The notes: generated by a model not told the origin, from the letters alone. 64,000 nt of DNA from Lytechinus pictus (GCF_037042905.1 NC_087251.1:44268001-44332000), one strand, 5' to 3'. Positions 42,201 to 56,168 are shown, counted from the stretch's first letter. Made by a program: numbers and translations.

Positions 42201-45200
42201 TTTTTTGCTGTCTCCATTATGCAGGTTCACGGTCAGAGGTAAAAAAAGTGGGTCACGTGTGTGACTTCACAAAAAAGCATGATTTTGAGAGTTCCAATTT
42301 CATTTTGAAATTCCTGTGAATTTCAAAATGAAATGAAATTTTCAAAATCATCATAATCATGATTAGTTATAAATCTCAAAAATTGTTAGATCAATAACTA
42401 ATTAAAGTCACGATTTGTCATAATTCCTGTCACACACGTGACCAAGAATGGCCACAATAGTATCAAAGACAGAGATCCTACCTTCTTGTTCTTGCCCGTG
42501 TGAACCTTGCCGACGTTGCCTTCCATGATGAACTCGTTACACAGCTCACTGATATCCCTCCCCTCCCATCCTTCAATGTTCTTCTGGATCTCGTTCATAC
42601 GCTGGATGCAGACCTGTCTCGACGCTAACCTGCGGTGAAACCTCAACGAGGACTCCCTCCTGTGACAAAGAGAGAAAAAGCCAGACCTTGGTGTTAAGGC
42701 GGATCCTTGCATCCCACTACGAGGGAGCCGTACATGTAACAAAAAGGGTAAACTGCTGATTCGTCCACTTATCACATGGTCTACCTTCATTTAGTCTAAT
42801 GCCATTCCGTCCATCAACACTTCGCCTAACAGCCATTTCGTCCAATAACCATTTGGTGCAATAATCACTTCGTCTAATCACTAAGTTCGTCTAGGACCAT
42901 TTTGTCTTGTAACCAGTTGGTCTAATTCCCATTTTGTTTTAATTCATTTCACCCAATTAACACTTAATCCAATTAGACCAAATGGTAAATGGAAGAAATG
43001 GCAATTGGACCATGTGGTAGTGGACGAACTGATGGTAGACCAAATGATAGTAGATGAACTGGTAATTGGACGAATTTGCATTAGACCAATTGGAAATAGA
43101 CCACAAAAAGTCAGTGATTTTCAATAATGATTGTTATAAGCTACTGAAATCCTTCCATCTGAATGGTTGAGAGCAAATTTGCCAGTGACAATTGCCAACA
43201 AGGGGCTTCATGAAACCTCTCCCACAAAAGATCTTTCGGGAAGTGCCCAAACTTTAGAAATTCATATAATTGCTATTAATTGATGGATTTTCATCAAACC
43301 TTCATTTATAGTCTTCTTTCATATTTTTTTGTTTTGTTTTTAATAAGCCAACGTGACATGGTTTCTTCATGAAAGAAAGCAAGAATTTTGTGTTTTTCAT
43401 AAAGCAAATGTCGAGTGTTTTTCACTGAAAATTGTTATAATCACCTGCAAATCCTTGCATCCAGAGCAAATTCATTTACTTACAAATGCCAAATGTGGCA
43501 CAAACCAATAACAACACATTATCAATTTATTATTATTTTGGTATTCAAATTCTAAACAAGGTCTGGGAATAGTAAGGGTAATAGTTTTCTGAACCATCAA
43601 AGCACAAGAACAGAACAATGAGGGCCACAGCATAGGCCCGTATTCTGGTCTCGGGTTTAAATTAAACCCTGGTTTAAAGTTGTAGTTTAGCTATGGATAG
43701 CCAATTGTGGCACAAATCTGTATTAGTACAGATTCAATTTATTAACTTACTTGACACTCAAATCATTCATAACTGCTGGGAATGATAACTGATTTTTTTT
43801 TCCTTCATTATGAAAGTAAATGGAAACAAAACAGTAAACATCTGAAATATACAATGTAAACAAAAATTTTGAGTTCTTGGCTCTCCATAATTTTAGCACA
43901 GAGTTAGACCATGGTCTAAGTTAGACCTAACTTCAGAATACGGGCCTTTAGTGTTTCAATATATTTGGCTACCCACAGTAAAAAACAAATTTAAAGGAGA
44001 ATGAAACTCTTGGAGCAAGTTAGCTTTTGTGAAAGCAGAAAAATCAAAGAATAAGATCAACAAAAGTTTGAGTAAAATAGGACTAGCAATAGAAGAGTTA
44101 CGAGCATTTGAATGTCGAGATCACTAATGCTATGGAGATCCTCCCATTGGCAATGCGACCAAGATCTATGATGTCACAGATGAACAACTCTCCCCTTTTG
44201 GACACTGAAAAAATACCCCAAAATATCTCTTTTTGCTCATTCTAATCATATGACAAACGATTCATCAATGATATAATGTTGTGAAACCTCTGTACTTGTC
44301 CTCTCATAAAGAGAACACCTCACCTTGTGATAGACTCTATAAAAGTGTGAATATAAGTGAAATAAGAACTAAAGTAATGAGGGAGTTGTACGTGTGTGAC
44401 ATCACAGATCTTGGTCGCATTGCCAATGGAGTATCTACATGGCATTAGTGATCTCAATATTCAAATGCTCATAACTTTCTTATTATTCATTCAATCTTCC
44501 TCAAACTTTCAACAATATGTTTCTTTGATTTTTCTCTTTGATAAGGATTCAGCTGGTTTCAAGGGTTTCATTCTCCTTAACAATGACATCAGTAGTGCAG
44601 GAGTTTCAAACTATGGGCAGAGGAGGCATTATTATTATTATTGACTATGTCTTCATTATCATGTATCTATTACTGTGGCGAAAGACCAAATACAGATTAT
44701 ACTTACCCCGTCTTCCTTTTTGGCAAGTGACCGGCACATATTCTGTCTAGCTCTGCTTGCAAGCTCTTCAGAAGATGGGATGCCTGGTTGCATTGACAAA
44801 AATATATGAAAAGTTGAATAAAATGAAGAATATCAATAATAATAATGATGATGGCGATGATGATGATATGGACATTTGTAATGTGCCGGTATCCAGCACA
44901 AAAAATGTTCATGGCGCAGTAAAGAAAGTGGGAAACAAAAGGAAACCTAATCAAAAAGGGGGAAAGAATTATAATTAGTTAAAAGCTTGTGTGAATAACC
45001 AGTATTTCAGTGAATTTTCGAAAGTAGTGAGACAAGATATATTGGGGATATCTCTTGGATGTTTATTGATATTCCAAAGGAATGGCCAGCATATTGGAAT
45101 GATTGGAGTTATAATTAATATTCAAATCTTATTACCTTACCATAGGAAATAAACTCATACCAATCACCACACCATTTGCACGTTAAAAAACCTACTCCTC

Positions 45201-48200
45201 TTTTCGTAAAGAGTAGGGAAGTTATCCCGGGGAAGTAGTTAACGTATTAATTTATTACTGATAATTATTAATTTATAATCCTGTTTCTTTGTAAAGTTGC
45301 ATGAGGGTAATTTGTACTGTATTATAGTAACCTTTCCAGATTAACTGTCCGACACTTATATGACACGCATGTGTTGATAGTGTCGTTTATTTTTTTATCA
45401 ATCAATCAATCAATCATACCAATCACCACTAATGTTGAAATTAAAGGGAACATTTCACTTTGTGAGCAGCTGATTTAAAAAATTCCAAAACGAAGATGAA
45501 ACATGTGTATGAGTGCTTGTATTTGTCCTCAAAAACCCTGAAACACACCACAATATAGGATGAAAAACTTTAATTCAGTAGCAATTCATTTGCCTGATTT
45601 TGATAACTGTCTCTGAGATGCATTTAGCTTTTGCCCAGTTTTCTCAAACTCAAAAAGTCGGTCGGCTGTGTTGACCATCTTCTGCTGTGAGCAACTCCTA
45701 TAAAGCACACACCATTATTTATTAGCTGCACTGTACATTCATGCTGGGTTCATCCAGAGTTTATGTGTTGTATTACAGACTCGCTCTATACACATCGTCA
45801 TTGGAACCAACCCTCATTCATTTTCAAACTTGGTTTACATCGCCAAAGTTTTAAAATAGTTCCTGTAGATATATATATCTTTTTGAAACTTTTTGTACTA
45901 GTATTTTTACACTATAAACCATACGTTTAGACCATTTCCAAGAACCAAAATGACAAATTTTTAAAATACGAACAAAGTGTAACAATCACTCTAACTCATG
46001 AGGGTATCAATGCTTCTATATGATGTTAAAAATCATGCGTATACGAGTAATACAGCAGTATGAGCGTGAGTTAACTTGAAATGCTTTATATGACTAATTT
46101 CTTTTACTTTGGCACATACTAAAAAACCTACTTTTAAGGAGAATATAAACCAAGAAACTACAATATTATCTGAATGACACGCATATTTCCTGGATAAAAA
46201 GACCTAATAGAAGCATATAAAACTTTCTTTTATGATTTTAACATGGTGATGGTGGAATAAATGATGGAATGCACGAATGAAAGATAGTATAGGCTCCAAG
46301 CATTGTGTGATACAAAGGTATGCAAAATTATATTACACTGTGGTGCAGTCATGATACCGGAATGGATTAATATGTGAAGCTTTATTCAAAACAGCTTATG
46401 AAAAATGAGGAGAGAACGGGAGGAGGAGCAAGAGTGTGGTAAAACAGTATGAAAGAGGGGGTGAGAATAAGCATTACAAACATTTTAATTAATAATCTAT
46501 CTATGTGCTTAAAATGATGACTGCACATATATTTGAGGGGCTAAATAAAGACACATAACTTAATCTACTCCAAAAATAGTTTTTCTTGGTTGCTGTAGCA
46601 ATCACTGCCAAATCAACAAACCATGTGCTAAAAAGGAAAATCAATCAAAAACTTTTTAAACAGAAACGGCTTGATTAGAAGTGAACCTCCCCACCCCCCA
46701 ACAACTGTCAGTGGATATGATGGTTATTATAAAAAAAAAAGAAGATGGATGATATGTATGTGGTGCAAAACAACACATGAATACAGATAGTGCTTGATTT
46801 TAAGACGAAAGTCCATCCTAAAATTAGGCTGGTTCGAATAAAAACAGGAGAAATGTGAGAGCAAAATATAGATCAAGGTTTGATGAAATCCATCTATGAA
46901 TTTTCAAAGTTTTCATTTTGTGATGTCATGTGCGAGCAACTGCAATTATTCATTAATGCATTCAATGACTTCATGACTGAAAATATTTTCTTCACAAAGG
47001 AATGTATCAAACAATGTTTGATGAAACGTTGAATGCACAGATGACACAAGTTTATTTTCTGTTTTTGAAAAAAAAAAAGTCACATAATCAAATAGAACTT
47101 TTAAAAATCCGTAACCCTGTAATTATTCGATGTGTTTTGGCTTTACCTTCATAAACATGTTTTTTGGAACTTTCTGTTTTTATCATGACCAACCTGTTAA
47201 GATGAAATTCCCTTTTAAACACATGACAGATAAATACAGTCCCATCTACCAGATATCATGTATGTATGTATCCTCGAATGAAAGAAAATTAAACAAACAT
47301 TCATGCCCGTCCACACATATATAAAGATTAAATAATGGTGCAAACCATACAGTATACATAAGTGACCCAAAGCACAGATAGAGCATATACGAAAGGGGTT
47401 GTTGAGACTTATTAGAGCAGGAATATTAGAGGATTAGACAAATAATTATCCAACTCACTTGTTTGAATTTTTCTTGTTCCTCCTCATTAGGTGAGGTCTT
47501 TAATAATAACTGAAATGACAAAAAGTGTTGACAAAAATATGCTCTTAATCTTAGGACGGTCTTACCGTTCCCCAGGTATTTTCCTTTCAAAAACCCTATT
47601 CTCAACTGAACTCTACGACCTAACGTGCACAGATTACATGGATGAATTTGCAATCAATCTGTTAATCTTTGAATATTTTCTCAGTAAATGACAAAGAAAA
47701 TCATTTTGATTACATAATAATCTTGGATGTGGGGAAACCATATTGCAGAATCACTAAAAAGAAAAAGGGACATGTTCTCGGTTTATATTCAGTACTTTGT
47801 TTATTGAAAGGGATGGATATATATGGCTGCTTCCGTTCAATTAAGTAATCACTTCGGGTGGGTGTTTCATAAAGCTGTTCATAAGATACGGATGACTTTA
47901 CGCACAACTGGTAACCCTTTCTCATGCCAAGTGATATATCATGTTCCAGTCATTCGTAAACTTGTGCGTAACTTTACGAACAGCTTTATGAAACATCCAC
48001 CAGGTAAAAATTGTAAAAAAAATCAAGTTTTGGTTGTGAGAAATCCTATTGAAGCTTCATCAAAATGAGCGGATTGTTAAAGCTTCAGCCTTCTGATGAA
48101 AGTTCTGACAAGTTTTCTGTATCAAATGGTTTCTCAGCTGTTCTAACATTCCTATTGACAACTGAATATTCTAAATTACCAAAAGTGAAGTATTTAAGGA

Positions 48201-55585: not shown

Positions 55586-56168
55586 AGGAGAATGAAACCC
55601 TTGAAACCAGCTGAATCCATATCAAAGAGAAAAATCAAAGAAACATATTGTTGAAAGTTTGAGGAAGATTGAATGAATAATAAGAAAGTTATGAGCATTC
55701 GAATATTGAGATCACTAGTGCCATGTAGATCCTCCCAACGGCAATGCGACCAAGATCTGTGATATCACACACGTACAACTCCCTCATTACTTTAGTACTT
55801 ATTTCACTTATATTCTCACTTTTATAGAGTCTATCACAAGGTGAGGTGTTTTCTTTATGAGATGACAAGTACAGAGGTTTCACAACATTATATCATTGAT
55901 GAATCGTTTGTCATATGATTAGAATGAGCAAAAAGAGATGTTTTGGGGTATATTTTCAGTGTCCAAATGGGAGAGTTGTACGTGTGTGACATCACAGATC
56001 TTAGTCGCATTGCCAATGGGAGGATCTCCATAGCATTAGTGATCTCGACATTCAAATGCTCATAACTCTTTTATTGCTAGTCCTATTTTACTCAAAGTTT
56101 TGTTGATCTTATTCTTTGATTTTGCTGCTTTCACAAAAGCTAACTTGCTCCAAGAGTTTCATTCTCCT
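55586..56168 (-). mobile_element. Same MITE, copy B, inverted relative to copy A and nested in another MITE
   Basis: Reverse complement of 43995-44577, TTAA TSD at 55582-55585 and 56169-56172. Confidence 0.9.

Follow-up and report, generated by a model that had tools for sequence, protein, structure and literature searches.

Alu pairs are found at the human ZKSCAN1, HIPK3 and EPHB4 circular RNAs (circRNAs) (PMC4201285), and circRNAs of the newt are flanked by hAT, long terminal repeat (LTR) and nMITE pairs (PMC11872487). At Drosophila laccase2, transposon-derived repeats are reported to act in circularisation (PMC4617980). No sea-urchin circRNA study was found in the literature searched, where circSOS comes up only through brief references to human circSOS2 in papers on cancer or ageing that have no bearing on the sea-urchin gene. 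The locus considered here is a window of 64,000 nucleotides (nt) of DNA from the sea urchin Lytechinus pictus (GCF_037042905.1 NC_087251.1:44268001-44332000), to whose numbering all coordinates refer unless a locus name precedes them. In this window two inverted copies of a miniature transposon with inverted repeats (a MITE), hereafter copies A and B, bracket eight exons of a SOS (Son of sevenless) gene. A sequence-only reading of the window had predicted from this arrangement an 860-nt circRNA. We consider it probable that the two copies are an ordinary intronic pair of an abundant MITE, brought together at chance level in a gene that is spliced linearly, and that any circle is at most a minor by-product.

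Copy A (43995-44577, plus strand) and copy B (55586-56168, minus strand) are each 583 nt long. Once copy B is reverse-complemented, it aligns with copy A over 584 columns, 25 of them different (95.7% identity), and the longest uninterrupted identity between them is 80 nt. SOS is read from the minus strand. Copy A lies in intron 8 (42660-44706; 2,047 nt), 129 nt downstream of the donor of exon e8 (44783-44707; 77 nt, ending in phase 2), while copy B lies 349 nt from the acceptor of exon e1 (55236-55153; 84 nt, encoding a histone-fold helix), in an upstream intron of 9,816 nt whose in-window part is 55237-64000. Exons e8 and e1 would be the donor and acceptor exons of a back-splice. The sites that it would use are canonical, with AG before 55236 and GTAAGT after 44707, and the predicted junction (44707 to 55236) would join …AAGACGG to GAGGTACTT…. 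All eight of the exons from e1 to e8 are flanked by canonical AG...GT sites on the minus strand, and their lengths total 860 nt (860 mod 3 = 2). The sequence-only reading had called just such a near-identical inverted pair, at about 130 and 350 nt from the splice sites and enclosing 860 nt in eight exons; in these respects it was accurate.

Each copy carries internal inverted arms of about 196 nt (78% identity), separated by a central stretch of about 190 nt that is not self-complementary. Copy A is preceded by TTAA (43991-43994), and its right-hand duplication has degraded to TAA. Copy B has TTAA on both sides and sits within a different small MITE, about 180 nt long, which it splits into 55538-55585 and 56169-56300; the terminal arms of this host element measure 44 nt and are 91% complementary. 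Two paralogues of the host, at 47857-47937 in SOS intron 6 and at 50725-50805 in intron 3, have the site intact, with just one TTAA in the second of them, and thereby fix both the ends of the copy B element and its TTAA duplication. With their different flanks, and with copy B nested in another element, A and B are best explained as independent insertions; their similarity is real homology within a transposon family. Compared with the majority sequence of 13 copies, copy A differs at 8 positions (1.4%) and copy B at 17 (2.9%), so both are young. The host element is one of a further family of small foldback MITEs, about 180 nt long (one paralogue extends over 50726-50910), and copy B struck it precisely at a TTAA in its interior. 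Yet another copy of the larger element, a third, 98% identical and in the orientation of copy A, is found at L014:6343-6926 (G000:C7:44358343-44358926), about 9.5 kb upstream of the first coding SOS exon. It could pair with copy B in place of copy A if it lies in an intron of the 5' untranslated region.

The family to which A and B belong is large. The 812-Mb genome contains full-length copies with 98% identity to copy A, at least 40 in number, and a 32-mer from the non-palindromic centre of the element has 3,997 matches with at most one mismatch, against none for the reversed control. TTAA is found on both sides in 12 of 13 inspected copies, the exception being copy A (TTAA left, TAA right). 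The termini AGGAGAATGAAAC...GTTTCATTCTCCT are present in 13 of 13 copies, three of them with single-base variants, giving AGGAG...CTCCT ends. The longest stop-free stretch within a copy is 67 codons. T2-MITEs are non-autonomous members of the Kolobok superfamily, defined by TTAA and a terminal AGGRR motif (PMC6004289). With its TTAA target duplication and AGGAG termini the sea-urchin element agrees with this definition; it is a young Kolobok/T2-type MITE of some 4,000 copies. A piggyBac-derived MITE was considered and rejected: TTAA is present, but the ends are AGG...CCT and not CCC...GGG. One pair of copies elsewhere in the genome, L004 and L005 (G000:C3:68972307-68972889 and 68975470-68976052), lies 3.16 kb apart with identical 15-nt flanks on both sides. 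Here a local segmental duplication took the MITE along, and the pair does not stand for two insertions.

At such a copy number, inverted neighbours are to be expected. At a density of one copy per 203 kb, each copy should have 0.12 neighbours within 12 kb in either direction, which amounts to some 236 such pairs in the genome, of which half, about 118, would be inverted. The first 100 listed copies, which are on contig C1, include 4 pairs within 12 kb (2 of them inverted), where 3.7 would be expected, and 180 kb of arbitrarily chosen DNA held no young copies, which matches expectation. With about 4,000 copies in the genome, the SOS pair is one of about 100 chance configurations and does not go beyond chance. 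By the same token, none of the roughly 100 similar inverted pairs expected in the genome should be scored as special when met singly.

RNA reads from three ribo-depleted runs of one organism (X21-X23) and one complementary DNA (cDNA) run of a close relative (X24) were placed on 42350-48349, a stretch that includes exons e6 to e9 and copy A. About 6% of each run was sampled, and exon depths range from 2 to 19. The junction partners e8 and e1 are 10.5 kb apart, and the examined stretch covers the e8 side. Exon e8 is joined linearly to e9 (42482-42659; 178 nt, minus strand), the first exon outside the bracketed block, where the PH region starts. The joint (42658/44706) skips 2,047 nt, reads CT..AC on the plus strand and is represented by 3, 12 and 10 reads in X21, X22 and X23 and by 5 in X24; intron 8 is therefore seen to be removed in these reads. 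In the ribo-depleted runs, all 25 reads have the orientation that transcription from the minus strand should give. Strand-specific depth was recorded for e6 (48316-48224; 93 nt) and e7 (47509-47459; 51 nt), both on the minus strand. As estimated from bins, approximate depths in X21, X22 and X23 are 8, 19 and 8 for e6, 2, 6 and 11 for e8, and 5, 10 and 11 for e9. The linear joint reads fully cover the depth of e8 in the ribo-depleted runs, and the summed depths of e6 (about 35) and e9 (about 26) reveal no clear excess of the enclosed exon. SOS is expressed and is spliced linearly. Although reads are few, a circle at more than about one third to one half of the linear RNA is unlikely in the ribo-depleted samples. 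A dominant circle is unlikely; a minor, low-level circSOS is possible, if rather doubtful.

The same runs are informative about the element itself. Copy A is covered to a depth of 300-590 per strand, and at its private positions 90-99% of reads carry the letter of the family majority. It follows that reads placed on copy A come nearly all from other family members, and that editing cannot be assigned to this locus. Joints of the 'opposite strands' type, at 44193/44382 and 44199/44376, coincide with the inner ends of the arms and have 9-21 reads per run; these are most likely due to reverse-transcription snap-back on the MITE hairpin. In the ribo-depleted runs, A>G changes occur at 98, 98 and 72 places and T>C changes at 101, 101 and 91, against 33-40 for C>T and G>A, a ratio of about 3:1. 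No such excess is seen in X24. One heavily changed position, 44168 (MITE position 174), reads A>G in 72%, 80% and 68% of plus-sense reads, versus 10%, 5% and 12% on the other strand. Folding puts this A across from a C, as the one base without a partner in a stem that is perfect elsewhere. An A·C mismatch within a stem is a classic context for ADAR enzymes. G stands at the equivalent position in copy B and in the relatives from the sister organism (in DNA or on both strands). The changes at 44168 and the A>G/T>C excess look like ADAR editing of the hairpins of the MITE family itself, with polymorphism as the alternative for sites read from RNA alone. Clusters of A-to-I editing had been proposed as a check on pairing between A and B; editing-like A>G changes are indeed there, but family-wide and not attributable to copy A. 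What they and the snap-back joints do bear out, as a signal of the family as a whole, is that its members fold on themselves in vivo, the competition with A:B pairing that had been anticipated. In X24 the centre of the element is almost without reads, while neighbouring repeats (43750-43949 and 47750-48149) are covered more deeply. This sparse coverage suggests a lineage-specific expansion of the present form of the family.

The gene around the pair is SOS, a Ras/Rac exchange factor, by the ordered matches to its histone-fold, DH-PH, REM and Cdc25 domains. In tblastn searches with two full-length SOS proteins, exons e1-e6 and e9 correspond to residues ~115-452, and same-strand, collinear exons running from 55239 to about 25600 correspond to residues 115-1054. 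Between e1 and e6, all on the minus strand, lie e2 (53477-53397; 81 nt), e3 (51349-51131; 219 nt, encoding a linker and the start of the DH/RhoGEF domain), e4 (50240-50097; 144 nt, DH domain) and e5 (49499-49389; 111 nt). Exon e3 matches residues 172-234 of human SOS1 (PDB 3KSY; E 3e-11). The Pfam RhoGEF match begins in e3 and goes on in e4, at scores below the curated cut-off when single exons are scanned. The nearest named SOS relative found is that of the sea cucumber Apostichopus japonicus. No tblastn match to the N-terminal SOS exons was obtained inside the window; they are located past its end, where the exon preceding e1, e0, lies 1 kb away (L013:1053-1310; phase 0) and the first coding exon is at L015:6688-6770. 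By this alignment the block e1-e8 encodes roughly SOS residues 115-400, made up of the latter half of the histone-fold domain and of the DH domain. Its earlier description as the autoinhibitory region is only loosely right: these two parts are enclosed, but the PH domain has its start beyond the block, in e9. Skipping of the block, said to cause a frameshift, does so, since joining e0 to e9 leads to a stop after 28 codons.

Two further features of the gene may be mentioned. SOS residues ~775-830, at the start of the catalytic domain, match three adjoining places in 32771-33291, with 50%, 54% and 86% identity, which has the look of an exon, or of exon fragments, in triplicate. Intron 3 has a pair of 63-nt direct repeats at a distance of 91 nt (50294-50447), and each includes a C run and, after it, an A run.

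An assembly gap of 270 N (52548-52817), the sole N run, lies inside intron 2, between e2 and e3, with microsatellite of the CAT/CAC type at its flanks. The homologues continue unbroken across e2 and e3 (residues 144-171 then 170-231 in one protein, 154-181 then 180-244 in the other), and exon order and strand are identical on both sides of the gap. By this comparison no exon is missing, so the gap alters only the length of the intron and the distance between A and B, not the 860-nt sum or its reading frame. A strand-skewed, long CAT/CAC (ATG/GTG) microsatellite tract occupies 51600-52900, on both sides of the gap, and probably explains the break in the assembly.

The following course of events would account for these observations. 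Two copies of the Kolobok/T2-type MITE would have inserted independently, in opposite orientation, into the introns on either side of e1-e8. In each pre-mRNA the upstream copy, B, would be transcribed minutes before its partner and would most likely fold at once into its own hairpin of about 170 bp, as other family members do, and this hairpin would be edited by an ADAR-type enzyme. Pairing across the introns is thermodynamically favoured, and the central loops of about 190 nt would stay free for it; it could thus bring the e8 donor within reach of the e1 acceptor and give the 860-nt circle as a minor by-product. The anatomy of the locus, the family, the linear junction and the signs of self-folding in family transcripts are observed; the order of these steps in time, and whether and at what level a circle exists, are matters of inference. 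Nothing indicates that such a circle is abundant or functional.

The principal rival to an ordinary, chance-level pair holds that A and B pair across 11 kb and drive back-splicing from e8 to e1, so that a stable circSOS accumulates to a biologically relevant level at the cost of linear mRNA. We regard this as unlikely, though by no means negligible, and several observations in its favour weigh against our own interpretation. In predicted folding of the pre-mRNA, copy B alone reaches -250.7 kcal/mol and copy A -238.8 kcal/mol, together about -490, whereas the A:B duplex has 561 intermolecular pairs and -975.3 kcal/mol and is far stronger than the self-hairpins. At equilibrium the duplex of about 580 bp that had been proposed is thus favoured over self-folding. 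The A/B match (589 nt, 95.8%) is also by far the strongest complementarity between the flanking introns, the next being 114 nt at 78% and 91 nt at 79%. Within the introns, the competitors are the arms of each copy (about 200 nt, 78%) and a few shorter pairs of at most 82 nt. The pair is close to both splice sites, without a comparable competitor in either intron, and its central stretches remain available for pairing even when the hairpins have formed. Inverted repeats of 30-40 nt suffice for circularisation in human minigenes (PMC4201285), and by the usual rules the locus is accordingly a strong circRNA candidate; the transposon pairs around newt circRNAs point the same way. Nor do the reads speak with full force for our interpretation. 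No back-splice read was seen, but one would show up as a loose end before 44707, and the 24 loose ends listed, out of about 1,590, all lie at transposon edges, so that the listing could not have revealed it; the signs of self-folding and editing are those of the family and are not assignable to copies A and B. Against the rival stand the RNA reads, in which the linear e8-e9 joints are at least equal to the depth of e8 and e6 is not clearly deeper than e9, and the order of transcription. Copy B is transcribed about 11.6 kb ahead of copy A, and its own arms are only about 190 nt apart. Folding and splicing take place co-transcriptionally, and the e0-e1 intron is removable once e1 appears, long before copy A is transcribed. 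Kinetics, we infer, do not favour the A:B duplex. Moreover, long duplexes are subject to editing and unwinding, and while short repeats suffice in minigenes, longer ones can be inhibitory (PMC4201285). Finally, a family that looks lineage-specific and a pair at chance level give no sign of selection.

The pair has also been thought capable of acting at the DNA level, recombination between A and B inverting the 11-kb block to give a polymorphic or somatic SOS-null allele. Two 583-nt copies, 95.7% identical and inverted 11 kb apart, invite this proposal, and an inversion of about 11 kb had been suggested for the window before, but the idea is weak and we hold it to be very improbable. Efficient homologous recombination usually needs a few hundred bp of identity. 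With at most 80 nt uninterrupted between A and B, inversion by recombination should be rare; every exon from e0 through the last has the same strand and keeps collinear order, and the e8-e9 junction is found in four runs from two organisms. Least probable of all is that the pair is an assembly artefact, a repeat collapsed or flipped next to a gap. There is a 270-N gap between the copies, but the distance from it to copy B is 2.7 kb and to copy A 8 kb, with consistent exon order and strand on both of its sides, and the copies themselves are distinguished by 25 differences, by different flanks and target duplications and by the nested position of copy B.

If an ordinary pair of an abundant MITE is what the SOS introns contain, the present value of the locus is mostly negative and practical. 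The mechanism of circularisation is already known elsewhere. The circle, were it to exist, would give echinoderms their first documented case of a circRNA driven by transposons and would offer a clean natural case of a recent MITE burst creating lineage-specific circRNAs in an invertebrate deuterostome, with individuals that lack one of the insertions as natural controls. The predicted 860-nt circle has an open reading frame of 312 codons, which begins with an AUG of e8 that is out of the SOS frame, passes the junction twice and enters the SOS frame, covering the end of the histone-fold domain and the whole DH domain; it is a curiosity without support. That the pair should yield a species-specific 860-nt circSOS(e1-e8) which lowers linear SOS or encodes a free DH fragment is quite improbable.

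Set beside exonic circRNAs driven by inverted repeats, the SOS locus is alike in having complementary transposon copies in both introns, within a few hundred nt of canonical splice sites. Multi-exon circles of several hundred nt are typical of those systems, and the one predicted here would measure 860 nt. Unlike theirs, the SOS circle is only a prediction, each repeat is itself a strong hairpin, and the block extends over 8 exons and 10.5 kb, so that its two copies are transcribed minutes apart.

For the RNA changes, the closest parallel is the hyper-editing of Alu elements, in which ADAR acts on intronic inverted-repeat transposons. The sea-urchin signal differs in standing at the level of a whole MITE family. 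It shares with Alu hyper-editing an A>G/T>C excess in transcripts of foldback repeats and a strand-specific, heavily changed site at an A·C mismatch in a long stem. As to the element, the nearest described relatives are the T2-MITEs of Xenopus (Xmix and relatives; PMC6004289). Host, length (583 nt) and arms (about 196 nt) set the sea-urchin MITE apart from these. It is like them in its TTAA duplication and AGGRR motif at the termini (AGGAG in this case), in its long terminal inverted repeats, in lacking coding capacity and in having amplified recently, to thousands of copies, and its first 16 nt resemble the ends of the frog elements XKol A2 and A4 (PMC6004289).

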